Assembly (NCBI GenBank): GCA_050084985.1 | Contig: JBITNC010000001.1 | Span: forward strand, 202,554,001 to 202,618,000 | DNA length: 64,000 nt | From: Nageia nagi | Lineage: Eukaryota; Plantae; Pinophyta | Direction: 5' to 3' | Part shown: piece after piece, positions 3,611 through 29,880 of the stretch | Position numbering within the stretch: the stretch's first letter is position 1 | Layout of the letters: the number at the start of each line of letters is the position of its first letter | Made by a program: the position numbers and the translations under genes | The notes under the pieces: model-generated | What the model saw: the letters and a program-made list of their open reading frames with translations, nothing else | What the model was told of the DNA's origin: nothing | Database searches by the model: none

Positions 3611-4425
3611 TTAGTGGCTCCTATCACTCCTAAAAATCTTATACCTAGAGGAAGTCCTACTCAAACTTGACTTCTTTATCCCAATTTGTTTCTCTAGTAC
3701 TACAATATGTGTTTGAAGGTAAGCTTTCTCATTGGTCAAGTCCTCTATCTTAATGTTGTGTTCCAACACATGATCCATCATGCCTAGGAATTCTCTATCA
3801 TTTGAAGCATCATGCATCTTCCATAAGGTCTCCATAGTCTACTCCAAGAATGTAAACCTAATCTTCAGTCTATCTATTTATCCATCCTTGGTAGCCACCT
3901 CCTCCTTTAGGATTGCCAGTTCCTCCTCAACTTGTTGTCTCACATCCTTCTTCAAGTCTAGGTCCACTTTTATTTGTTCTACAAAATTAAAATAGAAAAT
4001 ACATGTTAGTCATATTATTTTTTGTAAGTACTAACTTATAGGTACATAAGGAAGCACACTTAATTCATTCTCAAGCTATTGTTGGGTATCTATAATGGGA
4101 ATACTAATGGACATATCCCATCCACCTTGCTCCCCCTATTTAGGTGCATCCTCCTTCCATACATCTTATTCCTCCTCATCATCATCCTCACCTTCCTCTT
4201 CCTCTACTTCATTTGCTTCACCTTCAATTTTCTTTGCTAAACACACCAAACTATACAAACCAAGAGGATTTGGTATTTCTTTAGCCCACTATTTCAAGTG
4301 CTCATAATCAAATTAAGGCCCATATGATACCTCAAATCCCCCATCATCTATGTCACTCCCTAAATCCTAGTCTTGGAGAGGGTCCCATTACTATTCCCAC
4401 TTGATAGGAATCTCAAATAAATTAG
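3611..4425 (-). pseudogene. 3' half of the antisense PMD gene of a Tat/Ogre Gypsy element (acidic linker plus coiled-coil exon)
   Basis: The frame continues across the MULE insertion: RVYD (right flank) PNL (overlapping the TSD) FEIPIKW (left flank). Glu-rich stretch at 4170-4225, AG acceptor near 3980, coiled-coil ORF 3611-3835. Confidence 0.6.
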
Positions 4426-4990
4426 GTAAGAGCCTATCCTTTGATCAAATTCACACATACATCATGTGCATGTATCAAAAATAACACTAGTCATATATCA
4501 GTTCCACCACTGCCATCTCTTCTCAATTCCACCATTTCATTTTGATATATTATGGGCATATATTAAAATTGATATTATGGGTGTATATCAAAGTCCACCA
4601 CCTAGCCATCTTTTGACTTCATCGCTATGCTTAGATATATCATGGGCATATATAGAAGCTATATCATGGGTATATAGTGAGAGGAATTGAAAAAATCCAT
4701 CGCTCCAATGATATATATCATGGGCATATAGTGAGAACTTGAAAATTTTTGGAATTTTTGAAAAAGATATATTATGAGTGTATATTGGTTAGGATATCAT
4801 GGTTGTATATCAATAAATAAGAATAGAAAATTTTGAAATTTTTGGATGAGATATTATGGGTGTATAGCAGTTATATTATGGGCATATAGAGAGAACTACA
4901 AAAAATTTAACTACAATTTTAGTTATATTATGGATGTATAGAGAATATATCATGGGAATATAATGTATACATTATGGGCATATAGAAATA
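4426..4990 (+). repeat. Left TIR of the MULE, with many ATATTATGGGCATATA-type subrepeats
   Basis: More than 10 degenerate AT(T/C)ATGGG(C/T)(A/G)TATA motifs, inverted relative to 27010-27572. Confidence 0.85.
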
Positions 4991-5748
4991 ATTATAAAAT
5001 AAATTTAAAACTCACCAAACTATGCTATGTACCTACCAAGTTGTTTAACTTTTTCCATGCATATTGAATCACTCAATCCTCTATAGTTGCAGAACCCTGG
5101 ATCTCTAAGTGTGGGACTTTTTTTACAATGTATGTTATGCAAATGAAGTCTAGGTTTATGTTTTTCTTTTGATTTATACTTGCATGTTGATATATAGGCT
5201 TATTTATGTAATTCTTTTTGCATAAATAAATTTTTAGCTACTTATAATCTTACCCATTGTAATATTTATACCCATTGGAATTTTCATAACATTTTTGCAT
5301 GAACAATGAGAAAAATTTGCAAGCTAGGAAAACTCTTAGAATAATACAACATCAAGATGATATAGGGAAACAAAGTTATAGTTATGAATGAAGAGAAAAA
5401 TATAGCATGGCATACAAACAAGATTTTAATAAAAAAAATGTAATATTGTAAAGGTTTTAAATGGAGCATATCTAAAGCACAAACAATGTCACTTTAGATC
5501 AAGTGTTGGTCAATGTAGAACATGTGAGTATAGAACAATAATGGAAAAATAATATATATAATTACAAGCTTGTTAGTATAATTTTGAGGTAAAGTGATAG
5601 ATAAAATATATTAACTATAACCAAAATTACATCATTTAACATTAGCCTAGGGAAGGAGCAGACAAACACCCAAATGATTAAGTAAGGAAGTCAAGCTCTA
5701 AAACATAACCCACATTTTAGTCCAAAACAACATCCTATAGCTTTAGAA

Positions 5749-7330
5749 ATGGCTAGAGACTTGGTAAGAAGGGATCCAAGCTCAACAAAGGAGACTAGGA
5801 AGAATGCATAAGTATGACATCTTCTTTGTGAGGGAGGTTTAGATAGGTTTATGAATGCATGCAAGGGCAAGGATGAATAAATTTCACTAGAATATACACA
5901 ATCTTGGAATGAAGGCATTTTCAATGCTAATGGTTTTGGAGTTGGTATTCTCAATAGAGAAAATTGCCTAAGCAACCCACCTACCAAATATAGGAATAGA
6001 AGTAAGAAGGGAAGATAGGGTGAATAAGCTTGTAGCCAGACATAACTTCATTCAAACCTATATGTAAGGGCTCAATTTGGATAAGTTTTAGATAGGGTTA
6101 TTATGAAATTGCATTCCAAGTTTTTGGAAGGAGCTAACTAGTTCTGTGATAGAATATATAACTCTTGAAGAAAGGTACAATAAGTTTTATGCCCATATTT
6201 TTAATCTTATCAACCACTTTATGTTTCTTGAAATAGAAAAGGTTAATTTTGTCTTCTTTGTTTTCAATTCAATGAGAATTTCTATAAAGAAATTTAAGGC
6301 AAATTTATCACCATGGCTAATTCATGGTGGAGTGATAAAACTTGTGTATGAAAGAGCCTTGGAAAATATACCTAGGAGGATGCCAAGGGTAATAATCTTT
6401 ATTGGAGATCAGGTATTAGACACAAAGGAGAATAAGAACCTTGGGATTAAAACTTCTAAGCAAGAGAATAAACCCCTCTAGCCAATGTATTCAAATTGAA
6501 GGAGGGAAGAAATCTAATGAAGAGAAAGGAGAGCCAAGAAAGGATCCCACTATAAGGGAGACAAGGTCAAGGAAAGGGAAAGAAAAACTAATATTTGGGG
6601 TAGATAACATTAATGGGGAGGATAATGCATCATAGCATGGTAAATAAATGGGGGACATGTCAAAGATAACTAAATAAGAGACAATAGCACCCAACAATGT
6701 GGTCATAACAAAGGTAGACTCATTTTTCACAGAAATAGCAAAAATTGGTAGAGAAGTTAGAAAAAATATATATAAAAATGCAATAAAGCAAGAGGAGGGT
6801 AAAAAATAATAATGAAGTGATGTAGTGGAGTACAAAAATAATCCAATCTTAGGGATAATAAGGAGCAACACTAAATTAAGGAACAAAGAGGAATAAGGGG
6901 AGGATAAAGGAGCATTTAAAGGGGTGCAATTTATTAATTTGGAGGAACAAACACCTCTAAAGGAGTTAAAAATTAGATAAATTAGAAATATATTTATGAA
7001 AGCACCATAAATTCATCCTAAGGGAGATCTAAGGGGTAGAAATTCAAGCCTTCCAATTTAGAGACAATGGTACAGACCCAATAGGAGAGGGTAAAAGAGT
7101 TTTCAATAAGGAGATCTTTTAGTAATAAGATCCATAATGAGATGTTTGCAAAAGCATTACTAAGAAAAGGTACTCCCAACCCAATATATTATGAAGTTAA
7201 ATAGAATCTAGGATTTAAACAAATAATGTTAAGAAAAATGTACAATAAATACTACAAGCATAACTATGAGGAGCAACAATTCATGCCCCTTTCAAGAAGC
7301 CCACCATGATGGCAAGGGAGTGAAGCAGAA
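5749..7330 (+). pseudogene. Decayed intronless ORF of a gymnosperm-type repeated TE-associated family (function unknown)
   Basis: MARDLVRRDPSS..LCEGGLDRFMNACKGKDE*ISLEYTQSW and IEYITLEERY..IFNLINHF..VNFVFFVFNSM..LIHGGVIKLVYE, then a charged low-complexity tail. Many stops. Confidence 0.45.
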
Positions 7331-7859
7331 AAGTAGGAGTATTTTATGTTTATTTTTTGGGCACTACATAATGTATTGCTATTAGTTGTTTTGGCACTTA
7401 TTATTTTTGGGAACCTTATTATTTTGGACACTTACTCCATAAATGATGGTTGTCTTTAGAATACAGCAAGTATGCATGATGTGAAACTCCTATGTTTATA
7501 TTTATCTCAGCTATAAAGTTTTATGAAGAGCCTTACAAACTCAATATTTTTTAAAATTAATACAAAAAATGGACTTTGGGTGTATGTAAATAATGTATTT
7601 TTGTTATTATTTATTAATATTTTTATTTCATTGTATCAAATTGTGTTTGCCTCATGCATTTTATTAAAAAAACTCCCATACTTTAAGATTTTAATTCACA
7701 TTTTAAAGGCAATGGAAGTTTGAAACCAATGAATGCCTAATACTATGCTATAATGTAGCTTATATGTTTTATTTTATATAATTAATTGAAACACAATGAT
7801 ATTGAAATGGCATAGAATTTTTAATCTACCTATCCAAGATATCCAAGGAAAATAACTAT

Positions 7860-10440
7860 TTTTGTGAAAAGATTAACATGAAGAGGAATACCATGCACAA
7901 AAGGAAAGACATATTCAATTATTGCAATACCTTTATGCGGGTTGATTGCTTTCAAAAGGGGAGAAGAATCTAATATTGATGCATAAGGCATATTTTTGTG
8001 TGATAAAAATAATAAAAAGGGTCTGAAAGGCAATTACAAATCAAAGGCCATCATACGTGAAATGTAAGAAAATATTTTTTTTCCAATTTCAACATTGCAT
8101 TAACTTGTCTTCAAAAGTAATATGATTCTAAATTTTTTGTTTACTATATAGTTATTAGTGTACTTATTGTTATAAGTATCCACCTCCTCTAAAATGGAAG
8201 AGGAATTTTAGAAAGAAAAAGGTTTTCAATGTCATTTTATTGTTAAGGTATTCAAAATTTTATCTGAAATTGCATTTATTACATACACTAAATTTGAACA
8301 TGTTACACTTGATGGACAACCCTACCATGGAATGCATGATACAAGCAAAATAAAAAATGGAAGGACCAATTCTACTTCACATATGTTGAAAGATACTAGT
8401 TCTTTGATTGAACATTGCTAATAAATGGTGTTTCAGTTAATACAATATGTAATGTGCAATTTATGCATGAGTATTTTAAAAATGTACTTGCAATTTGAGA
8501 TCATTGCATTTTAATAAGGTATGTTAAAAATATATACAATAAATTGAAGAGGGGTAAGGTACATAAGGCTAAAAATGATGTCACTATTATGGAAGGATGG
8601 TACTAGGCCAACAAGGAATATATATATATATATATATATATAAGAACCCTAACCATAAAATTGAAAAAATTGTTATTGGTATTCAAAAAGAATGGATGTT
8701 GGATAAGATGGTGGAATTATCCCATAACAACATAATTTCAATGGATTCAACCTTCAATACTAATTTGTATGGTGTAAGTATTGCTAATTTTTTGCATAGT
8801 TGTTTATTTTTTCATTCTTGATGTTGTCCATAACTAAATTTTTGTACATTGTTGATTTTTCTGCATTGTTAAATTTTTGTGTATTGTAGTACCAATTTTA
8901 CACATTGCTTACATTTAATTCCCAACAAAGTGGTCTACCTATGGCTTGGGTTGTCACATACAAAAATGGTGTTGATGACATAGCTTAGTGACTTGGAATA
9001 TTAAAAAAGCATTTTCTAGAACACTAACCAAATTGGTATGTGAATGTTTTTCTTACTAATGATGTTGCTTCAAAAATCTAGGCCATTGGGTTTATGAATT
9101 TATTTTATTTTTAAAAAAATGCAAAACAAGTTCAAAATAAAATTATTTTGAATTTCAAGAGTGTTCTTTTCTCATGTTCATCTCATATATTTGTTTATGT
9201 TGTTGCATGTATACCTAGGAAAGTCTTTGGTTGCAAGCATTTGTTGTGTGTCTGACATGTGAAATGAGCTTGGTTAAATAAGACCTATAAGGTATCAAGT
9301 AAAGAGATTGGAAGAAAAATATTTGCAAGGTTAGATAAAATAATATCCAAATGCAAGGATGATGCATCTAGGAAAGTAGTTGTATCTAATTTTTATGCTA
9401 ATTTCCATAACAAGAAGGATTTTATAGATTACTTAATTGGTAATTAGTTCAATGCTGATAGAATTTGTAAGTACACTCATAACATGTTTATATTTTTTAC
9501 TTTTTTTTCTCTTATCAAGCATTTGTGATTTTGATTCTACATTTTCAATTGCAGGTATGTAGGCAAAATACTATAGAAATTTTTTCCATTCCAACCAAGA
9601 AATAAATTCAACCATAAAGTCACATCATTGTACTTTGAAAACTAGATTTCTATGTCAAAAGGTAAGAAAATATGGTATAATAATGTATTTATTACTTTAC
9701 ATGCTTTTTTAAATAGTTTTTTTATATTATATAAATTTGGTTAAATTGAAGACACTAGAATTTTGGAACAATTACAAGAAGGAAAAGAATCTAGAGAGTG
9801 TAATACAGAATTCTTGTATGATATGTGATTCTCATTGTGTCCCTCATGAAGATGTCATTAGTTCATACTGGATGAGGAGTTAAACAAATGTGTCAAAATA
9901 ATATCTTGTTACCCTTTAAGGTGAATACTCTTACACATGCACTTGTGAGTGGGCCCTTCAAGGTAACACATACAAGCATGTATTTAAAATCATAAACATG
10001 TCAATTGAAACTATTAATTTTCCTAATTATACAATGACACCTACACCTAATACCCCTTATTCTCCTTACAAGATATCCTCACCTCATGTTAATAGCTCCT
10101 AGGGTTAGGAATATTAGGTTGATCATTCATCTCCCAAGCATGGTTAAAATCATTGTTAGAGAAATATTATGATACTCCCAAAAGTAAGAGTTAGTTTATA
10201 GGTATGGTTATGGATATGCAACCTAGGTACCACCAATTTTCATTCCCATAAGACTCTAATGTAGCTAAAAGGTTCGAAAGAATAATGAAGAGTTGGATGA
10301 GTCCTTCAAGTAAAATCAAAAGTGGATCTCAAGAAATGAAATCATGTGGCTTAATTATTGATGCCCAAAAAACCTTACCTATGTCTTCCCAAGATCAAAA
10401 AATCTTGGTTGACCTAATACAACATAATTTCAAGGTAAAC
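7860..10440 (+). pseudogene. Spliced MULE (MuDRA-like) transposase with SWIM finger, At1g60560-like subfamily
   Basis: KKGFQCHFIVK (~8215), FEHVTLDGQPYHG, SMDSTFNTNLYG (~8736, first catalytic D), GLPMAWVV, FLTNDV, LLCV*HVK*AW (9241; CxxH) and SWIM CTCEWALQGNTYKH (9938-9979). GT-AG introns at ~8774-8889 and ~9467-9554. Confidence 0.85.
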
Positions 10441-11499
10441 ACTATGTGATTTAATTTTATTTTATTCATAGAAATCATTTTTCATAAATTCTAATTTTAA
10501 TTCTACTTTTACTCTTTCTTGCATATGATCATGCTGAATCAGAATCAACATGTAAGTCTTTATTATTGTCAACCATAGCTAATCAATATGATGTAGGGGA
10601 AAATTAGAATCATAATATTGGGCATAGAATTTAAGATCAATGTTAAACTTTATAATAAATACATTAATGTTCATTTTGATTTTCACAACTAGGATTGTAG
10701 TTAAGATTTTTGTACTCTTTTTACTATTTGCATATGTAGACAAATATGATATTATTAGTAAATTAATGGTGAAGGCATACCTTAGCAACCAAATGAGTTA
10801 TTTATATCCTCTATATGGATCTGAGATATTATTACATGTATTTTATTTCATCATAATAGTTGAGTTGTGTATGACCTGAGTTGTGTATGTCCTATGTATG
10901 GATTTGAGTTATTAGCATCATAATATCTAAGTTACTGGTATCATAATATCTATGAGAATTTCTTAAGAAAAATATACCTAAAGAATGAGAGTAGTAAAGA
11001 AAATATTATGAGAAAAATATGCATAAATAATTTTAGGGATGAAAATATTATTAACATAATGAGAAAAGAAAACAAGACATGAAAGAAATGAAATAAATGT
11101 GGAAAGGAGGCACAAAAGCTTGTAATAAACAAGACATAGTTACATGTCTAAATGTCCTACTCATGCATGGTTAAATTAAATACAATAAATGAGAAAAGAA
11201 AAGAAAATCCTTACAATTTCATGGTTAAAATTCCTACTATAAAAGGAAACAAGACATCACATAAATTAAAAAAGGTGCTATAGAAGTCTGTAATAAATCT
11301 TCAACATAAAGTAATTATAGGCAATCATTCATGCAAGTGGATAATCCCTATTAAAAAGAGTCGATAAAGGATATGCAACCCTTTATCTCCCCAACTTGAT
11401 TTATATTGAAAGAGCATAGGAACCAAGATCATTATTTTCTAATGGAAGTATGGGTAATCATGATTTTGACTCGTATACCTACTCAATGTTAGATTGAAA

Positions 11500-11830
11500 A
11501 TGGAGCTTACATTTATAATGAACCCTAATATATACCATTATTCATGAAACCTAATATATTTGAAGATCCATATAATTTACTGATCATAAACCACATTCAA
11601 TGATCATGAACCATATTATATACATCCATACATTATCCTTATATATGCCCACAATATAATGTATCATATATATGCCCATCATATATATTTATATATGCCC
11701 ATCATATATCTTTATATACATCCATCATATATCTTTAATGTAACATTATTGATGTTTGCCATACACACCCATCATATATTCTTATATATGGTCATAGTAT
11801 ATTTATATATATGCCCATGATATATCTATA
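11500..11830 (-). repeat. Internal cluster of TIR-type TATATGCCCATCATATA motifs
   Basis: Same motif and orientation as the right-TIR subrepeats (27020-27450), but without the terminal GGCTCTTCC. Confidence 0.75.
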
Positions 11831-11869
11831 TGCAATTGTAAGCTATTTATCTCATGAAAAGGTCATGCT

Positions 11870-12260
11870 TATGAAAGCAACAAAACCATTGAAGGGTTCA
11901 TAAAATAGCATGTATGATTTGTATTGCATTATTTCCTAGTTATGAATTCAAAAAAACCATTGAAAGGTTTAGCATGAATGAATTGTGATACATTATTCAT
12001 GGTTATGAATGCAGCATTACCATTGCAAATTCTATATTAAACAATATTGTAATTAAAACATAGAATTTGTACCCAGACTTTTATAGCTCTATTATTCATA
12101 AAATAACATGTATTATTTCTTATTATGAATTTGTTAGAACCATTAAAAGGTTCAACATGAATGACTTATAATGCATTATTGGTTGTTATGAATGACTCGT
12201 AAATAATATTACAATTAAAACATAAAATTTGGGCCCAGATTTCTATAGCTCTATTATTTA
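11870..12260. repeat. Degenerate local tandem duplications
   Basis: AACCATT(G/A)AA.GGTT recurs at ~11884, 11955 and 12138. AATTAAAACATA.AATTTG..CCCAGA.TT.TATAGCTCTATTATT occurs at ~12051 and ~12213. Confidence 0.6.
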
Positions 12261-12669
12261 TAATTGTATAAGAGTTGTAAAAATTAGTTCAATATGATGA
12301 CTATGTACAAAAAGGTGCTTTTACAAATACTCCATCAATATATGTAAATAATATTTGAAAAAATTAATGAAGCAACATTTACCTTATAGAGTCATAAACA
12401 CAATCAATTATATAGTCATACACATAATTATATATTCAATGTCAATTATACATAGTCAAATATACACATCAAATATAAATTATTGTTCTAAATTTTATCA
12501 TCATAAACATAATGATGGCAAAAATATAGAGATTCAAATATACAATGTATGTATTTTAATCATAATTACAATTACAAAGTCTTATCTAGGATTATACATG
12601 GAAAATGGGACGGGAATGAAGCATATTTTTTTGTTGTGTGTGAAGAAGCCACATATGAAATATGAATGA

Positions 12670-13500: not shown

Positions 13501-13574
13501 TGAGGTTACTAAATGCCTAAAACAAGATTTAAAAACACATAAAACATTAATGCAAATACCCACCTATTTTTTTC

Positions 13575-14370
13575 ATCCTTCACTTTTATGAGAGTGAAAT
13601 CGATCATCAAATTCCTAGTTAGGTTGATGTTACTTAATTCCCTAGCTTTGAATTCAATGACCCATTCATGCACATATTTTTCTATTAAGAACATAGTGAA
13701 GTAATCTTTGCAATACTCCTTACCCTATTTTAATATAGTGTAGTCTTCATCCTCCCATTTTTTCCTTTTTACCTTCTCCCACACTTTTGTCTATTCATCA
13801 AACTTCATAACATATCATTATCTACAATTCTCATCTAGTTTATGGCTAAGAGTATCAAAAATGTAACATGCATGTTCCTCAACCATCAAAATGAAAAACT
13901 GATTAGCCCATGCAACTATGTAAATTCTAGGAGTTTTTGAAATGGCATTCAACCTTTTGTCAATAGTTTTATCCTCTAGTATTTTGAACTTTGCCATTGC
14001 ACCCTTTGGATTAAGGTAGACCTATTTGGAATTCATAAAGTCAACAATCACAAAATTCAACTTATGCTTAAGAATAGATTCCAAATCAAAATGTCCATTT
14101 AAAAAGTTATCTTTGAAGGATAAAATCTCTTTCAACCTATTTCATTCTTCACATCCATGTATCAGTGCATTGAGTTATTTCTGGTTAAGCAAAATACTAA
14201 GGTATGCATGTAAACAACCCACAAGGAGTACACAACAAATTGAACAAACACCCACCCCTCCACCAACTTTTTAATCTATAAAAGTGAAATATATTTGAGA
14301 TTTTAGAACAAGTTTACCATTCAAGTTTGATAATCAAAAATCCTCCCATGTGGCCATAACAGTGCGACTA
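13575..14370 (-). pseudogene. Cysteine-protease-like domain homologous to the C-terminal domain of plant NT-C2/F26K24.5-like proteins
   Basis: Minus-strand translation: WEDF*LSNLNGKLVLKSQIYFTFID*KVGGGVGVCS..LNALIHGCEE*NRL..GHFDLESIL..IYIVAWANQFFILMVEEHACYIFDTLSHKLDENC..YVMKFD..GKEYCKDYFTMFL..RNLMIDF. Collinear with the remembered family consensus WE..S.DG..L..QVFFASIDQ..GESAC..HFDLETV..YIVSWNDHFF.LKVE..YYIIDTLGERL.EGC..YILKFD..GKE.CKEYIK.FL..RLQIEF. Confidence 0.75.
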
Positions 14371-15289
14371 CATTGACTATCATCTTCCTTTGCATGTAAT
14401 TCTTGATTGTCCTATTCTTATGCATGATAAAGAAAATTATGATTCCCTTAGACTCAAATAAATCTATTGAAAAAATATGTGCAATATTTTATTTATATAA
14501 CAATTCATGGCTACATAAAGCTACCCTTAAACATTATTAAGCATAGATGGACATAGTTTGTGGGGATCATTATAAGCGCCCTTTCTAAAAACTAACTTAG
14601 GAAATTTTAAGATAATTAGATTCATATTAGAGATGACTTTAAATAAAAATTTAAAAAATATGAAGGCAAATTTGAAGTTGGAGAAACAAAACTATAGATT
14701 TGTTTAGCAAATTTTAGAAGTCATTTTTTCATGGTAGCAGATTAAGGACTTATACTAAGTTGGCATAGTGATTGTAGAAGGCTACCACCTAATGGTATTA
14801 GGCCATCATCAGAAGATAGCAAGCAATTAGTAGCATGTTGTTACTTCATAGTAGAAAGATATCATTGCATGCTAGTAGGATGTCATCGCTTCCACCATGT
14901 GTTCACTATTACATCATGGTGTCATGTGTTAATTACCTATATATAAGCAATATATGACTCATTTTCTTCATTCTATCATTTTTTCCACCTATCTAGAGCT
15001 ATCATTTTTCTACAAAATCCTATCTCTAGCCTATAGTAGGATACCATGTGCTTTACTTTTTCATTAAATAAGATTTAGGTGGTAATTTTTTATTATTCTA
15101 ACCTGTCAAAGCTATCATTTTCTTTTTTTTTCCTACAATATTTTACTTTTAGCTACATTTTTTAATCTTTTTACTAGCATGTTTAACTCTCCTATAAAAT
15201 CTCATCTCTCATCATCCACCAACCGTCAATTTTCATATAGGAATTTATCATGTCCTAGTATTTTATCTTTTTTACCCCATATTGTTACT

Positions 15290-18070
15290 CAGAATGGGTG
15301 GACCAGATAAGGTTTAGAGGGCTTATTTTTATGCCTCAATTTGAAATATATTCTAATTTATTGTACTATATTATGTCAACTTATGATAGAAAATAAGCAA
15401 GGTTTTATGCGGTTACAGAATCAAGGAGCTTTTCCTTTGGTATTTCTCCTATAGACATAAGTCAATTGATTAGTTTATGCATCATGTGATGATGTATTCA
15501 AATCTAAAGCTCTCTTATCTCTAGAAGATAAAATATTTTTAGAGGAAACTTAACACATTCAAATTGACTTGATTGGTAAGTTATTTTTAAAATTTTATTT
15601 TAATCAACTTTATCTATTAATGTATAACTAAAAGTTACTTTATTAATTATTTTCATCTTTTTATGTAGAATATCAAAAAAAAGAGGAATAGTGTACAAAA
15701 ATTTCCCAAATGATTACTTCAAAGCAATCTATGAATTTTTTCAATCCAAAATTATTTTGATTTGCAAGGCAAAACATCATATATTCCATTATGGTCTATA
15801 GTTTACATCCTTCATTTGTTGAATGATCAAAAATTTGACTAGTGTTCATATATTTCAGATAGAATTAAACATGATCTTTTCTTTGCCATTAAAAATGATA
15901 TTATTTATATAGCATGTAAAAATTATATTTTGGCTTTTTATTATGAAGTTTTTTATAATATAATAAATATAGCTCTAATTCCAATAGTGTTAGATTCACA
16001 AATGAGTGCATTGACTTTACTAATAGAGGAAGTTTTGGTATTTATAAATAATAATTATTTTAGACTTTAAGTTAATATGTTTATTTAAAATTTTATGAAT
16101 ATTAACCAAATTATATTATTTCAATGTCAGGATAAACAAACATCAAAGAAAAGGGAAGTAGCATTTAGAGGAGTTCATCCTGAAGGCGATGGTGATAACA
16201 AGTCCATAGATACTTTTAGTCTATTAATATTTAGAAGATTCTCTACTAGGAGGATAAGGAATGTATAACCTTGTGTTGTTGGTGAATTTTCAATGAATAC
16301 AACTATTTTTTACTATAATTGACATTTTTTTATTCAATTATTAATATTATTTAAACTTTTGAATAAACTTTTATGGTTGTACAAGAAGGTAATGTTGGTA
16401 CTCCTAGGACAAGCTATCTTGAAAGGACTTCAAATTTTGATGTTGGAAAAGAAGTCCTATGCATTGAAGGTCCAACACAAGGAGGTAAAATTGTTATTTT
16501 TTTATGCCTATGTAATGTAATGGTGTTACTATATAGTAGCATTATGCTACCATGTAGTAGCATCATGCCACCATATGGTAGTATGTTGGCACCTCATGAC
16601 AACATGTAACCTTATAATAATACTATATAACCATGTGTGTTCTATTTAAGTATTTGTAATACTGACTTTAAGTCTATGAATATATGTTTTCAAATTTCCA
16701 TTCAATTCCTATTCCAATTATCATAGTTCCAGATCAAGATATGGTAGATTCACCTAATCAACCAATTCAAACTATATACTCTACACCTTCGTTAGGTAAC
16801 TATTTTTGGATTTATTTAATCTAAACATGTTGTCTCATATAAATGAATTCATATTTTATAATATACAATTTTTTGATACTGGTGGCAAGTCAAGTTCTCA
16901 AAAAAGGAGGTCACCCATGCCTCCACCACCTGTTCCACATCTAGTCTCCATAAGAAGAGTAGGAAAATGACTAAATTTACAATAAGATAATCCTTTCATG
17001 AGACACAAAATATTTAAATTATTAGGAATATCTTCTTTTCTTGATTTTTATTTAGAGGATGTACAAAGTGTTGATATTTCTAGTTTGCAAAATATACCAT
17101 TGGATGTGGATTATTTAGGGACTAATAATGGTTCAAATCCTTTATTAAGGACTCATGATATTATTTAGAGTCAAGTTAATGTTTTTCATCCTCAATAGAT
17201 AATTATTGCACCACCTCCACAAAATATGGAGGACATTGATTATAAAATGAATGATGAACTATCATACTTTCCATTGAATGCACTTGTTTCAAATGATACT
17301 TTGGTACAGGTAAATGACATTGTATTGGATAACATTAATACTTTAAAGAAATAGGAATTAAATGCCAAAGCATTGATAAAAAAATTAATACTCATTATCA
17401 CAATCATTCTCAACATGATTCTTTGTATAAATTGGTTAAGAATGAACATACCAAAATAGAAATTTTAAGGGCTCAAGCACAAGCAGGTTCAATCAATGTA
17501 CAAAGTGGATATGATAATAACATAATGGCTATTATGTGTAACCATTTGGAAAATTTAAATGCAAAGGCTCAAGCTTATTTTGACCTTTGATCAAGAAATA
17601 AGAATTTGGTAAAGATTGCAAAGGCCCAAAAGGAACAAGCTAAGGTAACAAAGTGCGTTCCTAATTCCAATCTTTACATATTTTTTATGTTTTAAAAATC
17701 TTTTCATATTTATGTTCATGAATTTTATAATGTTATTTAATTATATGCGAGGTATGATAAATTGGTAAAAGATGTTAAAATGTTTAAAATTCATTTGAAA
17801 ACTATAAAAAAAGTATTAGTATGACCATTCAAATAAATGATGAAATGGCCCAATTAAACAAAATGAATAATGCTTATATTATGAAAATCAACTTGATCTA
17901 GATATATTATGGAAAGAGAAAACCACTATAGATTTGATTTTGCTTTCATCAAATAATGCACCTACTTCAAAAAGAAATATATTATGCAATCTTGTCGAAG
18001 CAGTTGATCTTATTGGTATTTCATCATATGAGCCAAAGGATTTAAGAGGAAGAGAAGGGGGAGAGGAATA
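15290..18070 (+). pseudogene. Multi-exon accessory gene of the hAT element: PMD/DUF1985-like N-terminus, coiled-coil C-terminus
   Basis: EWVDQIRFRGLIFMPQFEIYSNLLYYIMSTYDRK*ARFY..SFGISPIDISQLISL from 15292. Short GT-AG introns (e.g. 15576-15668). Heptad-like Q/N/K-rich coding at 17320-17900. Confidence 0.5.
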
Positions 18071-18179
18071 TTAATTTGATTTGTTACTATTAAGACATTT
18101 CTACTACTTTTATGATTTTTGTATTTACTATTAATACTAATTTTATGGTTTTTATAGTTACTATTAAGACTACTTTGAT

Positions 18180-18570
18180 GGTTTCTATGATCTTTGAATG
18201 TTATGATTTAATGTTATGTTATGGTTGAAATTTATGTAATGGTTATGTTATGTTTGAAATTTATGTTATGGTTGAGTTTTATGTAATGTTAAGTTATGGT
18301 TGAAATTTATGTAATGGTTATGTTATATTTGAAATTTATGTTATGGTTGAATTTTATGTAATGTTAGTTTATGGTTGAAATTTATGTAATAGTTGAAAGT
18401 TATATTATGTTATGGTTGAATGTTATGTTATGTGTGAAATTGAAATATTATGTTTTATTAAATTTAAATAGATGATATATAAATGTTTGAATGTTATGTT
18501 ATAGTTGAATTTTATGTAATGGTTGAATGCTATGTTATAACTAAATTTTATGTAATGGTTGAAATATTAT
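18180..18570. repeat. Tandem TTATGTTATGGTTGAAATTTATGTAATGG repeats between the convergent hAT genes
   Basis: More than 10 imperfect copies directly visible. Confidence 0.9.
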
Positions 18571-18939
18571 GTTTGTTCAAATTTATATAGTTGATATAAA
18601 AATATTTAATTTAAAAAAATATTTTAATGTTTCATTAAAAAAAATACTTTATACAAAAATAACCTATAACAATTATTTTAGATAAAAAATACAAATATAC
18701 TAATTGAAATTATAATCCACTAATAAAAAGTAACAAATTTGATTAGCAAAGAAAACTCTAAGATCCATAACTATAAGTATTTGAAATTTGAACCCTTCAG
18801 TAATATGTTTTACTCAAGTATTTCAAATTCAAAGTTTTTGGTAACCTATTCTATTTTACCCTTTATTGTTGTTGGTGTGTACATTTCTATTGGAGCATTT
18901 TTTTAATAATTAACTACACCTCTCCTTTCTAAACCAAAA

Positions 18940-19794
18940 AACCAAAGATCCACTACCCTTTCTATAGGAAAAGAATCCAAACCATAAGAGGAAACATATA
19001 ATCTAATACATGTATCCAAGTTTTATCTAATTTATTTAGAAGCTTGAATTTAATAAAATATAAAGCATTGAATACCCTTTCATCTTCAATAGAATCCAAA
19101 ATCATTATTTAACACAATTCATATAATTTGAAATACTCACTAATATTATCTCAAAAAACATAACTTGGATAGAGTTTTAACCAAAGATGTTTAATGGCAC
19201 CATTTTTGTTGGTTTTGATAATAGAGAGTATTACTCAATCATAAAAAGTCCAAAATGGTTGGCTTATTTTGTCAAAAACTCTTTATTTAAAATACCATAA
19301 TTTTTTTTTCCATTTATTTATACAAGTTTACCAAAATATGTTCTAAGAATTACCATATATTTATGAAATAAGTCATGAATTAACTGTTCACCATTACTTA
19401 TATCCTAAAATTTAGGATTCACAATTGCCATTGATTCAAGTAAAGCATCTTGTTGAAATCATTCATGAATGTCATTAGTTAAGGTTGTACAAATATTTCT
19501 CAAGTCAACACATGTTTCATAAATACAATTATCAAAAATAATATGATTTACATGTTCATCTTCATATTCTGCTCTAACCAAATCCCTTTATATATTTTGA
19601 ACATACAATGATGTCAACTTTCCTTTCACCTCTATACAAACATGATCATTGATATTAAATTTTAAAAAAATGTTTGGATCTTTAAGATTTGTTAAAGTTT
19701 TCCATATTTGAAATAAAGGACCTTTAAAACTGTCTACACCTATATAAAGCATATCCAAAGATAAATATACTCATTTTCTCAAAGACATGAAATC

Positions 19795-19833
<39 letters not shown>

Positions 19834-21400
19834 AGCATTTTTCACTAAAGTATTGATTTCCTATAACATTGGAAGAATTCCATATAATGTTAGCAATATT
19901 TGAAAGTCTATCAAATGGAATAGTAAATATTTTGCTTTATCAATCACACTACAATGTTCATACATATAACTAGTTAAAGATGGATATTTAATCAAAACTC
20001 TTTTTGTTGGTTCATACAATGAAATCCATCTTGTATCATTATACTTTAAAATCTTATTTCCATTATTTATTCCAATAGAGAAATTTTTGAACCCTATATC
20101 TTTTTGGGTTTCTTGTGATATATGCATGCAAGTCATGAATAAGCTCTTCTATTTTTGATACACTTATAAAAGTGCTAACAATTCTATATGCAAGGTTCAT
20201 TCTATGCACCATGTAATGAATGGGAATCATATAAGGATCTATTGAAGTCTATAATCTAACACAAAGATCATTCCAATTGCCTTGCATTATTGATGCACTA
20301 TCTACTCCAACACATATCAATTTTGTAGTAATTTCATAATCATCCATTCCAACAAAATCTATTAAGTTAGAAATAACTAACTTGTAAAGATTTTTTGCAT
20401 TGCAATTTTTATCCATTTTATGAACATTTAATATATATGGTGTCCTACAATTATTCTAAAAAGTGTATACATGCATGCAAACCCATGAAGTATTATCCAG
20501 TGTTGTAACTTCATCAAGTGAAAGTGAAATAAATTATGATTCCTGTAATTTTGTCATTGAAATTCTTAACCTCAACCATCAAAAAATATTTTTCCATTTC
20601 CCAAGAACTTATATCTAACCAATATTTTTGTAATATATTATGTAATCCAACTTTTTGATATAAAATTTTAAAATTTATAATAGGTATACCATGTTTAAGA
20701 ATATGAAAGATAGTACAAAATTGAGTAAATTTTGCTAACCTTTTTGCATCACTATTTTTTTCAAACTGTATTTCTAGTGTTCCACATTTCTTTTATAGAT
20801 ATTATTTTTCTTTCATGTACCTCTCATATTCTACCTTATATTGTAAGTGTTGTACTCATCTCTAATTTTATCCCTCCAACACTTAATTGTTTTTCCATTT
20901 TCATATATTTTATTGTAATATCATTTATCACAATATTTTTGTATTGTATTTACTTTTAGTTGCATTCTATGTTCTCTTTTTGTTGCCTAAAAATATATCT
21001 TACATTTGCATTTTGTTGGATCATTTCCATTACTAGGATCAATTAGTTCAATGAATGGATATTTTGCTACCCAATCAACCTGGAAAACTCTTCCAATAGT
21101 CCATTTCACACTTCATTTTCTTTTAAACTTTCAAATATTTTATTATGTAGATCTATCTATAAATTTTTCTATACATTTTTTTGAACTTTTTTTTCATGGA
21201 TGGGTTAGGATTATCATCATATTAAGGTGGTCCATTTATAGGGTACTCAATTGTAAGTGGTTCTACATCAATCGGAACAAAAACATCATCAAGTGGTACA
21301 TGATTATTGGGGTTTTTTATTTTTCATTATTAGATGGTACATCATCATCATCACAAGGTATTTTCAATATATTGAAGATAATACATTTGAAATTTCAAGT
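18940..21400 (-). pseudogene. hAT transposase (ZNF862-like type)
   Basis: RVFQVDWVAKYPFIE (~21090), ISLSLDEVTT (~20520), VGVDSASIMQG..IPIHYMVHRMNLA (20190-20315), KILKYNDTRWISL (~20030) and dimerisation-like DSIEDERVFNAL.FIK (19050-19100). A (TA)n tract lies at 19797-19829. Confidence 0.9.
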
Positions 21401-22435
21401 TTTACATTAAAAATTACAAATAAAAAAAGTACCTATATCAATTGCATATGTTTATTGAGTTCCTTCATTTTTTGATTATCTATTAGCAAAATAATATAAT
21501 ATATCATTTTTTCTTCCCTTTTACTATTGTTCTTAGAGTCCATAGTATCTGTAATTAACATCTGAATAAAAAAATTTAATATTATACCAAATAGATGAAA
21601 ATTATAAAGCTATTGCATAGATACTACCATCATTTGCAAGTAGTCTATTTTTAGGTAGTAGTAGGATGCTAGTGGATGATAATAGGATGCTACTAGATGG
21701 TATTAGGTACTAGTACCTAGTACCACCTAGTAGTGTAGCTACCTCCAAGAAGTAGCAGAATACCATTGGATGGTAGAAGTCTATTATCATACGATAGTAT
21801 CCTGCTACCATTTAAAGGAAGAAAGCCACCATTTGAAGATAGCATGCTACCTTCCAAATGTAGAATAATACCATATTTAAAATATATTATCATATGGAGG
21901 AATATTCCACCATCAAAAGGTAGATACCATCATTCAGGGGTAGATGCAACCTTTCAAAGGCATATGAGACTATTTAAAGGCATCTACTACCATTTATAGG
22001 TAGATGTGAATTACAAATATTACAAAATATAATAAGATTTAGAATAAGATCTCCTTGATTATCACAACTCTTTTTATATCCTATAGGCTTTGTTGATATG
22101 CTTGTTCAAAGGAGATCTAGAAGAAAATAATAATGGATGTATCAAATTTATTATTTAGAGTAAGGTATTTATATGGGGTGATGTAATCAAAATATAAATA
22201 ATAATTTGTAATTTTAAGACAAACTTGACTATTTATTATTTCAAAATAATGGAAATTTAATAAAAATTTAATTTAAAATTTAAATTTGACTTGGTTACTC
22301 GGGCCAAAAAATAATAATAATAAAAAAGTTTGGCAACATGGATATTGTTCTAATCCAAAAAAATTATCAGTTTCCATTTTTTAGAATTTCTAAAATTAGC
22401 TTATTATTGAATATTTGTGGTTAAAATTATCCCTA

Positions 22436-23830
22436 ATAGTTTTATGGTGTGCAAAGATCATAGTATATGCACAACATGGGTTTTCAAAAAGGGCCCTACA
22501 AAAGTATAAGCATAGAGAAGGCATCCAGATTGATTGACAAGATAGATGATGCAAACATATTTTCATGGTGTGCAATGATTAAAGGATATGCACAAAAAGT
22601 ATTTTCATAAATGGGCCTACATACTTGTAGTTAGATGCAATTATTAGGTGTAAAACTTGACTCTACAACTTTTGCCAACATTCTTTAAGCATGTGCCAGC
22701 AAAGGGAGCTCTGGAAAAAGGTATGGGCATCCATAAAAGAGTAGTTTGAAAAAGTTTTGTAGACATAGTTTCTTATTGTGCAATGATCATAAGATATGCA
22801 CAACATGGGTTTTTATAAAATGCCCTAACTAATTGCAATTATTAGTTGTAAAACCTAACTTTGCAACCTTTTCCAACATTCAATAGGCATGTGCCACCAA
22901 AGGGAGCTCTAGAAGAAGGTATGGGCATCCATCAAAGAGTAGTTGTATAGAATACATGATGCAAACATAGTTTCATGGTGTGAAATGATCACAACATATG
23001 CACAACATGGGTTTTCATAAAAGGCCCTACATGTAAGCAAATGTAATGTCAGCTATAAAATCTAACTACAATCTTGCCAATGTTCTTTAGGCATGTGCCA
23101 CCAAAGCAAGCTATGGAAAAAGGTATGGGCATCCATAAAAGAGTACTTGGATAGAATGCATGATGCAAATATAGTTTTATAGTGTGAAATGATCACAAGA
23201 TATGGATAACATGGGTTTTTAGAAAAGGCCTTACAAATTTGCAATTATCAAGTGTAAAACCTAACTCTACAATCTTTGCTAGCATTTAATAGGCATGTTC
23301 TACCAAAGTGACCTCTAGAAGAAGGTATGGGCATCCATTAAAGAGTAGTTTGATAGAATGCATGATGTAGACATAGTTTTGTGGTGTGCAATGATCATAA
23401 GATATGCACAAACTATGTTTTCAAAAAAGGCCCTACATATTTGTTGGCAAATGAAATTGTTAGGTGTAAAAAACTGACTCTACAACCTTGCTATCATTCT
23501 TCAAGCATGTTCCACCAAAGGGACCTATGGAAAAAGGTATGAGAATATATAAAAGAGTACTTTGATATAGAATGCATGATGCAAACATAGTTTCATGGTG
23601 TGAAATGATCATAAGATATGCACAACATGGGTTTTTAAAAACAAGCCCTAAATGCTTGTAGGAAGATGTAATTATCAACTGTAAAACTTGAATTTGGAAC
23701 CTTGTTAGCATTCTTCAAGCATGTTCCACCAAAGGGAGTTATGAAAAAATATATGTGTATCCATCAAGAAGTACTTGTATCATAGGATATGCACACGAGT
23801 TTTTAGAAAGGGCCTATATTAGTGTACATG
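22436..23830 (+). pseudogene. Tandem array (~7 units, ~200-215 bp) of PLS-class PPR motif sequence
   Basis: Each unit translates to NIVSWCAMI.GYAQHGF..KAL..MQL.GVKPNS.TFA.IL.ACA.KGALEEGMGIH. Units start near 22436, 22555, 22765, 22966, 23170, 23372 and 23586. Stops and frameshifts throughout. Confidence 0.85.
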
Positions 23831-23879
23831 TATGCAAAAATTATGTACAAACATGGAAAATATTCCCTACAAATAGCAT

Positions 23880-25930
23880 CAAGAATACCTACACAATGTT
23901 ATTTTTGATATCTTGTGTTACTTGTGTAATGGGATAGGTACACTTTGTAGCATCTACAACATGTAGCATCCCATTAAGTATGGGTATCATGTCACCACTA
24001 AATTTACATGACATCACCTCTATGGAAATGTGCCCCTCTCTGATAGTGCTACTATGGCATGTGCTATTAGGATCATCATTATCCACATTGTCAAACCCCA
24101 TTATATTACCAAGAGGGTCAAGGAGATGTACCTTTTGACCCTTTTTAGTGGTAAATGATCCATCATTTACACATTCCTATACTTGTGGACTAACATTTTC
24201 CTACATAGAAAATGAAGTCAACGGTTAATTTAAAAATATAATTATTATGAAACATAAATATCATTAATTGTATAAACATTTGATATGTATTTAAGAATGA
24301 TTATACATGTTAGCCTATAATGGATTGGTTCCATTTAGGTTACAATAATTTAGTGTCCCATAACACAAATCCTTGAAGAGCTTCTCCCAATGTCATAGCA
24401 TCCCCATTGGATATGGGTAGCTTGTAACCATTGAAATTAATTGTTATCACCTCTATTGAAACATGTTCCTCACCAGTAGTGGTTCCATGGCATGTGTTAG
24501 GATTATCATTATGCACATTACCAAACCCCACTATATTACCTTTAGGGTCAAGGATATGCACCCTTTGACCTTTTTTAACATCAAATTGATCACTATTTTC
24601 ATACCCAACCTAGATGTTAAATAATGATGCTTTAGATACCCTCAACTGAATACAAAAATATAGATTTTAGTTCAAATTAAATTACAAAAAAATGGAGTTA
24701 CCTAATCATTCACCTCATCATCAACATTAACCTCATCATCAACATTCACCCCATCATCAACATTCACCTCATCATCAACATCTCTAGTATTTTCTATAGA
24801 TTGAAAAATCAACAATATTATATATTTGTACAAATATCTAATAATAATAATTTTTAATTTTTTTTTAAAAAAAATTCTTATTGCATTGTTGTTTTATTAC
24901 CATCCCTTGTATGATAAATATAACATGCCCCTTACTAAATTCATGTTTATAATGTTGCAATTTTCTCTTTTTACTCCTATCCTTAGAATTATATTCTTCC
25001 AATTTTGTTTGTATTTCAACAATGGTTGGCTTGAAATTTTTTTCTATATTTGACACCATACTAAAAACAAAGACCGCATGACACTTTATAATGCTTACTA
25101 TTAAATTATCTTTGCATCACCTTATTTACATCTACTATATATTTATTTTGGTTATAAGATGATGGATTTTTAATGCCATCTACTAGCCTCCTACCTCTTG
25201 GCAGAGAAGCAACTGGTGGTGCACCTTCATGATCTTGGCTCCTTTGCTAGTATAACCTCTTCCTATCACCCTTTCAAATAACACTAATCAAACCATAATT
25301 CTCAAGAAGGAAAAAATATTGAATTCCATCATCTTTCTTGGTATTCATCCATTCTCCCACAACATAATCTACAAAGACATCTCTATCATCAGCTATCCGA
25401 TGCAAGCTCCTAAAATCCTCCTCTAAAAGTTCTATAGTGTATTCTTGAAATAAAAAAAAATAGAAGATCAACATATACTTGTACTACCCACACAAAATAA
25501 TAAAAATAAAATGTGTATTATTTGGCACATACCATCATGGGCAGGGACATTTCTACAACACACTTCTAAATTATGAATGCAACTTCCTTACAATTAAAAA
25601 AAATGATACATATTCAAAGTATGAGTTTGAAATAGGGTTTATCAATACATAAAATACTAATTAAAAGTATTTTTTTGTGATATATTATGGTTTTTAATTA
25701 CCTATTAAACATGATTCAAACATGTTTCATGGAATGAAATGATTGGAGGATATGTAATACAAGGCTACATACATCAAGGATACCTTAAACTCTTTCATCT
25801 GATGAAGCACTTGAGTAAACTATCAAATTTATTACCAAGCTAAAATGTATGTTTGTCCTAGGTGCTTTTACATTATATAAGAATGTAGGAATCATGATAT
25901 TTTTGACAACACTCTTTAATTTGGTGGAGA
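23880..25930 (-). pseudogene. Spliced gene with two tandem Tnp1/En-Spm-like (TnpA C-terminal type) domains
   Basis: VHILDPKGNIVGFGNVHNDNPNTCHG..GEEHVSIEV..LPISNGDAMTLGEALQGFVLW (24340-24570), with a paralogous copy at 23889-24145. An acidic 18-bp repeat exon (VDDEVN)x4 at 24705-24785, and upstream exons at 25060-25445 and 25700-25930. Confidence 0.6.
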
Positions 25931-27009
25931 CTAAATATGCTCCATCTTATGTTCTTATTTTAATTTTATTATGCAAAAGTGGGAAATTAGGATGATGATG
26001 AATAAGGACATTGATGAAAGATGGAGGAATAAAAAAGACACATGTATGTAGTTGGATTGAAGTTTAATCAAGGATAAATGGAGTAAAATTGATGAATAAA
26101 AAAGACAGTTGGATGTGGTTGGATTTAAGTTCACAAGAGGGTAAATGGAGTAATAAAATTGATGAGATATTGAATAATAAAAAAGAAACCTATTTTTAGT
26201 CATATTGAAGTTAATTGTAGAAGAATTTGAACATTCTCAATTCCCCTTTCCCAAATTTTTTTAAAATATGCCCAAAATTGGAAATTTTGTAATAAGGTTT
26301 ATAAATACATCAAATACTAATTAAAAGAGTATTTCATTTACATGTATTTTTTATTCTCATAAGAAGGATGGTTTTAACTAAGAAAAAAGCCCTAACTTTG
26401 AATCTGTATAGTTATTACAAATAACAAATAAACTATCGAACAAGATATTATCAAATAATACATTATCAAATAATTTATACAATAAGAAATTAGTAAAATT
26501 ACCCTAAACCTTACACATTATCAAATAATGCCCCAAATTGGGAAATTTGAAATAAGTTTTGTTATTAAATTGAATAATCTTTAAAAGCATATTTCTATCA
26601 TAAGAAAAGCATAAGAAAAATCCTAACCAAAAAATCCTATGTAGAGAATTGATGAGGAAAAATTCTAACCAAATGAATTTAACAAGAATGCATACTAGTA
26701 TGATCATCATGCCCCTACTGGTAGAAAGCTCCATGTAGTAACACCATATAGAACACTCTCCAATTTCATAGGATCTAGTTATGGTCTTTTAGTTGATGAA
26801 TAAAAAACAAAACAAACAAATGATAAATGTATATGAAGAAGAAAAAATTAGACAAGGGATACGAGCATATGAGTACGAGGAATCATCTTGGTGACATCAA
26901 CTAGGATGGTATACAAATATTTCAAGATAGGATCATCTTCTTTTATTTTGAATGTCCAAGAAAATAGAAATGGTGGATACATGCCCCAAATTTTAAGTTT
27001 TTATTTATA

Positions 27010-27572
27010 ATTCTCACTATACGCCCATGATATTTTCTTTATACATCCATAATATAACTAAAATTATAGTTTAATTTTTTTTAGTTTTTACTATATGCCT
27101 ATAATATATCTCATCCAAAAATTTTAAAAATAATTATTCTTATTTCTCGATATATGCCCACAATATCATAACTAATATATGCCCATAATATATCCATTTT
27201 AAAATTTCAAATCTATACACCCATGATATATTTGATATAAACCTATGATATATCTAGGCTACAAATTCTAAAGTTTTCCTCCTTCTTGCTATATGCCCAT
27301 GATATAGGTTCGATATATGCCCATGATATATCTCGCTAGAATAGTAGAGTTTTCTAGTACCTCTTGCTATACAAACATGATATAACTTCTATATGGGTAG
27401 TAGACTTTGATATACACCCATATTATCATTTTTGATATACACCCATAATATATCAAAGCAAAGCAGTAGAATCGGGTTGAGGTTACGATGGTGGAATTGA
27501 TATACATATAATGTTATTTTTTATATACATCCATGATATATGTATGAATTTTTCTTAATGAGAGGCTCTTCC
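27010..27572 (-). repeat. Right TIR of the MULE
   Basis: Reverse complement of 4426-4990, e.g. GTGGAATTGATATA..TGTTATTTTT.ATA..CATGAT.TATGT.TGAATTT..AGGCTCTTCC. Confidence 0.85.
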
Positions 27573-28210
27573 ATAAATTAGGATCATAGACCCTATACCT
27601 TCCTATCTACACTACAAACTTGCATTTTGGAGGAATGCCTTGCTTCATCTAAATTGCCTCTTTACCATCTCTAGTTTATAGGGCTCAACAAACATCTTCC
27701 TTTTCTATAAGTAGCAAGGAGTTCATTACCAATATAACTCACCTAGCTTATTTGGATACTATGGTAAACCATCAACCTCATCCATCTAAACCTCTTCATC
27801 TTTTCTTTAAAGGCACAATGAAGGTAGGAATCCTTCTTTCCCTTATGGTACTCCTTGTACCTAGTTAATCACTTTGTATTACCTTTGCATTATGCATTAG
27901 TTATACCCTCCTCAAAGTAAATAGGATTCCCTTTTACAAGTACCCATAGAATCCTATGTATATCCTCTAGAATGATGGTGATATCACCAATAGGTAGGTG
28001 AAAGGTGTTGGTCCTTTTTGACCACCTCTCCATCATGGTTGTGAGGAACTCCTTATCAACCCATACATATGGAGAATGAAGTAGGTACCCCATACCAACA
28101 TGTTGCAATACACCAAGCTCATCATCTATAAGCTTCTCCCACCACACCATACACTTCTTCTAGCTCTAAGAAATACACTTGAGCTCCATCAATAATTGAT
28201 GATACTGTAA
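27573..28210 (-). pseudogene. 5' half of the antisense plant mobile domain (PMD) gene
   Basis: FLTTMMERWSKRTNTFHLPIGDITIILEDIHRIL is the PMD hallmark (ERW..T.TFHLP.GE.TITLED). Confidence 0.85.
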
Positions 28211-29419: not shown

Positions 29420-29880
29420 AAATCACATCTAAGAATGGGGCATGTACCTCTTGATAATGATAACATATCATGTCTACATCTAAGAATGGGACATGTACCT
29501 CTTGATGATGATAACATATCATGTATACATCTAAGAATGGGGCATGTACCTCATGATGATTAATGGTATATCTCTCATAATCACCTTCATTGGTTGGATC
29601 TCAATTAAGCTCCATCTTTGAGTCATCTTTGTTGGTTGGGTCTAACTAACCTCCATCTTTGAGTTACTTTTGCTAGTTGGATATCAACTAACCTCCATTT
29701 TTTAGTCACCTTTGTTATTTGGGTCTAAAATAACTATCATCATGCTAGTTCTTTATGATTCATATGTTGCATCAAGGAATGGGGCATGTACCTCATGATA
29801 ATGTTAACATATATGGTTTTGATTATATGTGTTCTATTTAAGAATGGGGCATGTACCCCATGATGATATGAACACACCTT
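29420..29880 (+). repeat. Tandem repeats in the Tat 3' non-coding region
   Basis: 51-bp unit CATCTAAGAATGGGGCATGTACCTC.. at 29426, 29477 and 29528; ~39-bp GTCACCTTTGTTGGTTGG.. units at 29580-29740. Confidence 0.85.

Follow-up and report, generated by a model that had tools for sequence, protein, structure and literature searches.

Inside a 23-kb Mutator-like element of Nageia nagi: a probable old two-gene transposon, enlarged by later insertions, with a DUC-type deubiquitinase homolog

What kind of mobile unit fills the 23 kb between two long inverted repeats in the genome of the conifer Nageia nagi? The window analysed here is a stretch of 64,000 nucleotides (NCBI GenBank assembly GCA_050084985.1, contig JBITNC010000001.1, positions 202,554,001 to 202,618,000 of the forward strand), and all coordinates below are positions in it. 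A sequence-only reading of this DNA had described the unit as a giant, formerly autonomous Mutator-like element (MULE) that carries at least four unrelated cargo modules beside a transposase. With moderate confidence, we favor a simpler explanation, in which the locus holds an old, inactive two-gene MULE that inserted once and was enlarged by later additions, rather than representing a novel class of giant cargo carriers. The most interesting content of the element is a DUC-type deubiquitinase domain in its accessory gene.

By its target-site duplication (TSD) and its terminal inverted repeats (TIRs), the element is a MULE. The sequence ATAAATTAG could be read directly at 4417-4425 and, identical in all nine positions, at 27573-27581, and the two copies directly abut the outer edges of the TIRs. 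MULE TSDs are about 9 bp (8-11 bp) long, and given the base composition of the window, all nine positions would match by chance at a fixed place with a probability of 3e-5. In the left TIR (4426-5000, +), the outermost ~120 bp are free of subrepeats, and 12 copies of a 16-nt subrepeat come next; the right TIR (27000-27572, -) has 13 copies. The inverted termini start G[T/G]AAGAGCCT, and 11 of the terminal 13 nt match. Aligned with MAFFT, the TIRs are co-linear over ~580 bp, with 395 of 555 aligned positions identical (71%) and 78 gap columns, while blastn gave 68% identity over 584 columns (E 1e-58 to 2.5e-60). At ~575 bp, these are the long TIRs with matching ends expected of a MULE. The left and right TIRs therefore align co-linearly over ~580 bp, beyond the short subrepeats, and the earlier description of ~560-bp inverted repeats 23 kb apart with a perfect 9-bp TSD was borne out. 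The subrepeat itself, ATATYATGGGYRTATA, has 31 copies in the 64-kb window compared with 1.1 expected, and apart from the copies in the left TIR (all +) and the right TIR (all -), six are internal.

We asked whether there is a single mobile unit here at all, or instead two unrelated solo TIR remnants in inverted orientation accompanied by a chance 9-bp repeat. In favor of solo remnants, the TIRs are just ~71% identical and the element has no intact content, every reading frame within it being broken. Such remnants do not account for a 9/9 match placed exactly at both outer TIR edges, for a co-linear alignment with an E-value of 1e-58, or for the 11/13 match of the terminal nucleotides, and we consider this explanation extremely improbable. 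The data support a single Mutator-type insertion that has long TIRs and a 9-bp TSD at its boundaries, contains transposase-like remnants, and is now dead. No further TIR copies, no other copies of the element and no empty site were found in the rest of the 64-kb window. Pattern scans for double subrepeats in prokaryotic and viral contig collections, which contain no plant genomes, likewise returned no match.

The whole element measures 23,147 bp. A nested hAT-type element accounts for 7,875 bp of this, and the remainder computes to 15,264 bp, in agreement with the ~15.3 kb given previously; when a fragment resembling a PPR gene is also subtracted, the element is about 13.8 kb long. The site of insertion could be described from the flanks. 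We ran Pfam on 60-odd stop-free stretches, exon by exon, and the sole significant match lies outside the element, on its right flank: the N-terminal part of a decayed PMD frame at 27893-28159 (-; PF10536, E 1.1e-12, profile positions 11-62). Pfam detected no PMD signal on the left flank, and in silico excision of the element yielded a 29-codon open stretch across the site, in a stop-filled region. Of the previous claim that an interrupted PMD frame rejoins across the insertion site, the PMD on the right flank is real, but the rejoining comes down to those 29 codons.

Inward from the right TIR, the minus strand carries what we propose to be one multi-exon accessory gene. Its upstream part (24705-25535, -) includes an acidic stretch of 18-bp repeats (24707-24781) and open stretches at 24868-25116, 25109-25246 and 25277-25483. 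Two exons follow. Exon A (24304-24645, -) contains an 89-codon open stretch (24343-24609) that is 64% identical to the database protein P0021, and exon B (23963-24167, -) is truncated: its homology, both to P0021 and to the second copy described below, ends at 23963, leaving off the last ~33 codons of the domain. Each exon encodes a domain of ~90 aa, and the two domains are homologous to each other. P0021, the nearest homolog, carries the precomputed family accession PF26133, which is absent from the Pfam library that we used. A domain profile search also recovered a diverged second copy of this region, the metagenome contig L002/L001. Positions 320-1940 of L002 align to 25535-23963 of the window at 77-82% identity, including both exons, and the upstream part is co-linear with it at 82% identity; L002 covers the 5' half of the accessory gene alone, without termini. 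Splice-like borders around both exons are common to the window and L002. Because the second copy has the same double domain and the same borders, the double domain is ancestral to both copies and is not private to this locus.

Downstream of these exons on the same strand lies the protease-like domain noted previously. We found that it is homologous to the catalytic domain of the DUC-type papain-fold deubiquitinases (At2g25460/At3g11760/At5g04860-like). The homologous region (13578-14390, -) is held in one frame with 6-7 in-frame stops, and tblastn of database proteins against the window gave E-values down to 8e-26. A phmmer search against 1.8 billion representatives returned 17 matches; among the longer of these that were scanned, four have an N-terminal C2 domain (NT-C2) above the Pfam cut-off, and NT-C2 was seen on host-type matches alone. 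The three Arabidopsis proteins have been shown to be papain-fold deubiquitinases specific for K63, with a catalytic triad of Cys, His and Asp and a Phe as gatekeeper, in a December 2025 preprint that describes the enzyme family and does not mention transposon-borne copies (bioRxiv 10.64898/2025.12.04.692294). Compared with AtDUC1-3, the window copy has a homologous catalytic domain (27-33% identity over ~265 codons) in which the Cys (GVCSI), the Asp (YIFD) and the gatekeeper Phe are in place. It differs in being transposon-borne, in the replacement of the catalytic His by Gln (NQFF, where host proteins have DHFF), in its stop codons, and in the absence of the N-terminal C2; upstream of the catalytic domain we found a PPR-like array and the two accessory-gene exons. 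The closest relative is P0001, a 106-aa protein from a Logan contig, which is 63-71% identical and has kept the His (EHFF). With its His lost and its frame interrupted, the window sequence is a homolog, but not a functional member, of the DUC family. Peptidase_C48 (ULP1), the protease family known from other MULEs, had no match in any Pfam scan of the element.

DUC domains without a C2 also occur outside this element. In Cannabis sativa, we observed C2-less stand-alone DUC-domain proteins of 254-284 aa (P0006, P0019 and P0020) and a 1047-aa gene model, P0018, with several DUC-like segments; these may be tandem or transposon-borne DUC copies. P0018 was considered as a candidate fusion of the accessory-gene exon domains with DUC and was rejected: it is a gene-model fusion with an ALG6/ALG8 glycosyltransferase that includes several C2-less DUC segments.

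Facing the accessory gene, the left half of the element carries decayed frames on the plus strand that we infer to be the remnants of a transposase (7806-10100, +). The transposases of MULEs are MURA-related DDE enzymes with a Pfam MULE domain and often a SWIM zinc finger. The frames here have many stops, frameshifts and probable introns, and motifs were sought by eye in a three-frame reading. This identified the DDE-like motifs DSTF (~8740), TNDVA (~9060) and SNQEINSTIK (~9590), and a SWIM-like C-x-C...(C->Y)-x-H motif at 9920-10000 in which one Cys has been lost. The remnants look like the plant At1g60560-like SWIM group rather than MURA proper, a resemblance seen by eye that no tool confirmed. 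Between the left TIR and these remnants lies a purine-rich region (5001-7800, +), with Lys/Glu-rich open stretches at 6107-6632 (+) and a 173-codon antisense open stretch at 6494-7012 (-), the latter having been counted as an orphan open reading frame and one of the cargo modules. This 173-aa frame matched no Pfam family and no homolog, although a length filter lowers the weight of the homolog search, and it sits within a purine-rich composition skew in which both the Lys/Glu-rich frames and the long antisense stretch fall (5.7-7.0 kb). We find it unsupported as a gene.

The remaining module is the PPR-like array, and here the question is whether it travelled with the element or arrived later. 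The PPR-like fragment (22436-23898, +, antisense to the accessory gene) consists of ~6 tandem 202-bp units (22546-23776) followed by a non-repeated PPR-like tail to ~23898; it makes up about 1.5 kb of the 15.3 kb, and a stub with its first ~25 bp lies to the left of the hAT element at ~14535-14560. Tandem repeat finder reported a period of 202 with 5.4-5.9 copies and 74-76% matches, and the units are 74-93% identical at the DNA level. Because this period is not divisible by three and the units are similar as DNA, we conclude that a captured fragment was amplified at the DNA level and that this is not a coding PPR array. Its position is informative as well. L002 has the whole of exon B, up to a GT donor, whereas in the window the PPR-like sequence begins ~60 bp past the breakpoint at 23963. 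Since the breakpoint lies beside the array and is absent from L002, the PPR fragment is secondary, having arrived with or after the rearrangement that damaged the accessory gene. Exactly at the end of exon-B homology, two copies of the 8-nt string GATGCTAC are separated by 13 nt (23963-23970 and 23942-23949, -), and this repeat may represent microhomology at the rearrangement junction.

The PPR-like array was in turn interrupted by the nested hAT-type element (14553-22443 including both TSDs, body 14561-22435). Its 8-bp TSD, ATAGTTTG on one side and ATAGTTTT on the other, matches at 7 of 8 positions, and its short termini, TGGGGATCATTATAA and TAGGGATAATTTTAA, match at 12 of 15, as found for hAT elements. 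Removing it in silico restores one unit of the PPR-like array. With its own TSD and TIRs and the restored unit, the hAT element is an independent insertion and not cargo. Its open stretches had no Pfam match, and motifs of a hAT transposase, an enzyme with a C-terminal dimerisation domain, were recognized by eye alone. Two other features were observed within it: an AT-rich, dense minisatellite at 18100-18590 (periods 18, 29, 47 and 75 bp), and open stretches at 16800-17590 (+), on the other strand from the hAT transposase remnants, with one below-threshold NAM-associated match (E 0.023).

These results bear on the proposal that all modules, the orphan frame, the protease-like domain, the PPR array and the double Tnp1 domain, were propagated in the same order by a giant, formerly autonomous MULE family. 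One TSD-flanked unit does enclose them all, a diverged second copy of the double-domain region exists, and DUC paralogs of the transposable-element type are found elsewhere (P0001 and P0003). On the other side, the PPR-like array starts at an exon-B breakpoint that the second copy lacks, the orphan frame is without support, and the length of 15.3 kb falls inside the published range for MULEs. The two exons and the DUC domain, moreover, share the minus strand facing the transposase, and taking them as a single accessory gene is preferable to counting each as a cargo of its own. The count of at least four unrelated cargo modules was not upheld, and we consider a multi-cargo family of this kind rather unlikely.

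A number of results weigh against our own explanation of an old two-gene MULE and have to be set beside the evidence given above. First, the transposase remnants had no match in Pfam, in homolog searches or in the PDB, and matches in the ESM Atlas were at chance level; these pieces, of at most 80 aa, were searched singly, and a length filter lowers the weight of the blank homolog search with the N-terminal piece. The transposase of the sequence-only reading is therefore a putative one, with motifs seen by eye in its favor. Second, the Pfam Tnp1 family (Transposase_23/24) gave no match at E<=1 to either accessory domain, to P0021 or to P0022, for which reason we call the domains and their exons Tnp1-like; the double domain reported before is real as a pair of homologous ~90-aa domains, but no Tnp1 family was found in it. 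ESM Atlas matches to a Tnp1-like piece were likewise at chance level, and PDB sequence searches found nothing. Third, the PPR family PF01535 matched two of nine open stretches, both times below threshold (E 0.028 and 0.097), the PPR motifs being otherwise assigned by eye. Fourth, a Copia element directly follows exon B in L002 and breaks this copy, in which no TIR motif was seen. In no recovered copy is the accessory gene linked to one of the family's TIRs, or the DUC exon to the Tnp1-like exons, and no database protein joining Tnp1-like and DUC domains was found. Fifth, exon identity (80%) and intron identity (87%) between the window and L002 are alike and dN/dS is ~0.6, in copies that differ by ~18-20%, and therefore there is no evidence of selection on the accessory gene. 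We propose that the Tnp1-like exons and the DUC domain probably form one gene, which the shared strand, read inward from the right TIR, would suggest.

A sixth point concerns the middle of the element and allows a composite origin. Six copies of the TIR subrepeat, which the sequence-only reading had not recorded, form a cluster at 11626-11831 (-) with a 23-nt period and in the orientation of the right TIR. This partial solo internal TIR follows closely downstream of the transposase remnants. Tandem repeats of ~160-180 bp (11869-12263) lie beside it, between the two convergent genes. In a composite or macro-transposon, a transposase MULE of ~7.4 kb (4426 to ~11830) would have been joined to 15 kb ending in a second right TIR, a reading that we consider unlikely; that the outer ends were then used in one aberrant transposition, and that the accessory half is not native to the transposase half, we regard as equally doubtful. 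There is precedent for such a structure. An additional solo internal TIR has been documented in MULEs that are flanked as a whole by a TSD, one of them also with a decayed transposase, and slippage, acquisition and aberrant use of external and internal TIRs have been proposed as their origins (PMC3310237). Types 4-6 of Ferguson & Jiang 2012 resemble our element in having an outer TSD and an internal TIR-like block without a TSD of its own, but the block here is a ~200-bp array of 16-nt subrepeats, which is below the extended TIR similarity of >=100 bp used in that study (PMC3310237). By blastn, the cluster matches the short motifs alone, without the terminal ~100 bp of the TIR and without co-linear TIR alignment, and a full nested TIR was rejected on this basis. 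Neither a TSD nor a partner left TIR stands beside it, and a convergent accessory gene beginning at the opposite TIR is what MULEs normally have.

Returning to the two-gene MULE, the events at this locus can be put together as follows. A MULE with long TIRs would have inserted once into decayed, PMD-bearing sequence and generated the 9-bp duplication. Its own body, of about 13.7-15.3 kb, would have had the classic layout of two convergent genes, with the transposase reading inward from the left TIR and a multi-exon accessory gene reading inward from the right TIR. The latter would have encoded an acidic repeat, two Tnp1-like domains of ~90 aa and a C-terminal DUC-type deubiquitinase domain, the same design as in MULEs that have transduplicated a ULP1 protease gene, except that the ubiquitin-family protease is another one. 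Three additions to this core would have enlarged the element. A fragment of a PPR gene may have landed between exon B and the DUC exon, removing the end of exon B, after which a 202-bp piece of it was presumably amplified in tandem at the DNA level. The hAT-type element of 7.9 kb would have inserted into the resulting PPR-like array, and a partial internal array of the TIR subrepeat would have formed between the two genes. The order of these acquisitions relative to the transposition behind the present insertion is inferred.

How does this element compare with MULEs that have been described? In maize MuDR, mudrA and mudrB are convergent, each reading inward from a TIR, and the TSD is 9 bp. Our element shares with MuDR the long TIRs, the 9-bp TSD and, as we read it, the two convergent genes, and differs from it in that MuDR is 4.9 kb long and mudrB has no protease domain. 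By analogy with MuDR, the 16-nt subrepeat would be a transposase-binding site. Pack-MULEs are short and non-autonomous, lack a transposase, and have an interior of captured host-gene fragments. A host-gene (PPR-like) fragment does lie between MULE TIRs here; unlike in a Pack-MULE, it resides in an element with transposase-like remnants, disrupts the accessory gene and is tandemly amplified. The element is not a Pack-MULE, its interior being made of transposase-like remnants and an accessory gene.

Large MULEs have been known for some time, and the earlier argument that typical autonomous MULEs are much smaller than this one did not hold up for dicots. Complete grapevine families published in 2008 range from 11.9 to 17.7 kb, which brackets the 15.3 kb that our element measures without the hAT: Mutavine-1 is 17.7 kb with a TIR of 70 bp, Mutavine-18 is 16.2 kb including a ULP1 region with TIRs of 230-263 bp, and Jitvine-2 and Jitvine-1 are 14.4 kb and 11.9 kb, with no TIR lengths listed (PMC2528002, Table 4). 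In further families of that table, TIRs reach 710 bp (PMC2528002). MULEs that carry ULP1 occur in Arabidopsis, melon, rice and grapevine, mostly as dead copies, with the protease domain opposite to the transposase (PMC2528002, PMC13317346); in the KI-MULE (KAONASHI), the ULP domain is reverse to mudrA (PMC2528002). Like these elements, ours combines a putative transposase with an accessory gene for a transduplicated papain-fold protease domain specific for a ubiquitin-family modifier, has that domain reverse to the transposase (DUC on the minus strand, transposase remnants on the plus strand), and falls in the size range of 10-18 kb. It differs in having a DUC-type domain and not ULP1/Peptidase_C48, in the two Tnp1-like domains that precede this domain, and in its ~575-bp TIRs, given that KI-MULEs have none. 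By analogy, the element would work like the ULP1-carrying MULEs, and with TIRs and no C48 domain it is not itself a KI-MULE.

Several other features were observed in the window outside the element. On the left flank, at 709-2799 (+), an intact open reading frame of 565 aa (1102-2799), the longest in the window, comes after a gag-like N-terminal stretch of Copia type (709-1086); the frame is acidic and Cys-rich and matches no Pfam family. Another Copia trace, a reverse-transcriptase fragment at 59330-59502 (+), is 73% identical to L002:2089-3030 (-), part of the Copia element by which the accessory gene is broken in that contig. To the right of the element, at 29400-29870, tandem repeats of ~51 bp have open frames on both strands (e.g. 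repeated 'HLRMGHVPLDDDNISC'), and a related block lies at 39804-39897.

In size and layout, the element belongs with what has been described of dicot MULEs since 2008, and a third of its length is a later hAT insertion. It offers a cleanly bounded example of how a two-gene MULE can grow, through nested insertion, through acquisition of a gene fragment with tandem amplification, and through internal TIR-like arrays. What sets it apart is the accessory gene. We tentatively propose, at slightly less than an even chance in our judgment, that a TIR-bearing MULE lineage propagates a second gene in which Tnp1-like domains are fused to the catalytic domain of a DUC-type (K63-specific) deubiquitinase that lacks the C2 membrane anchor. 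If true, plant Mutator elements would have recruited a ubiquitin-family protease for a second time and independently, in parallel with ULP1 in KI-MULEs/VANC, and this would hint that removal of ubiquitin or ubiquitin-like marks helps transposons escape host control. Should the DUC gene indeed be propagated by the family, plant MULEs would have captured ubiquitin-family proteases at least twice, and what such proteases do for a transposon would become a broader question, one that an enzyme whose specificity is known could help to test.

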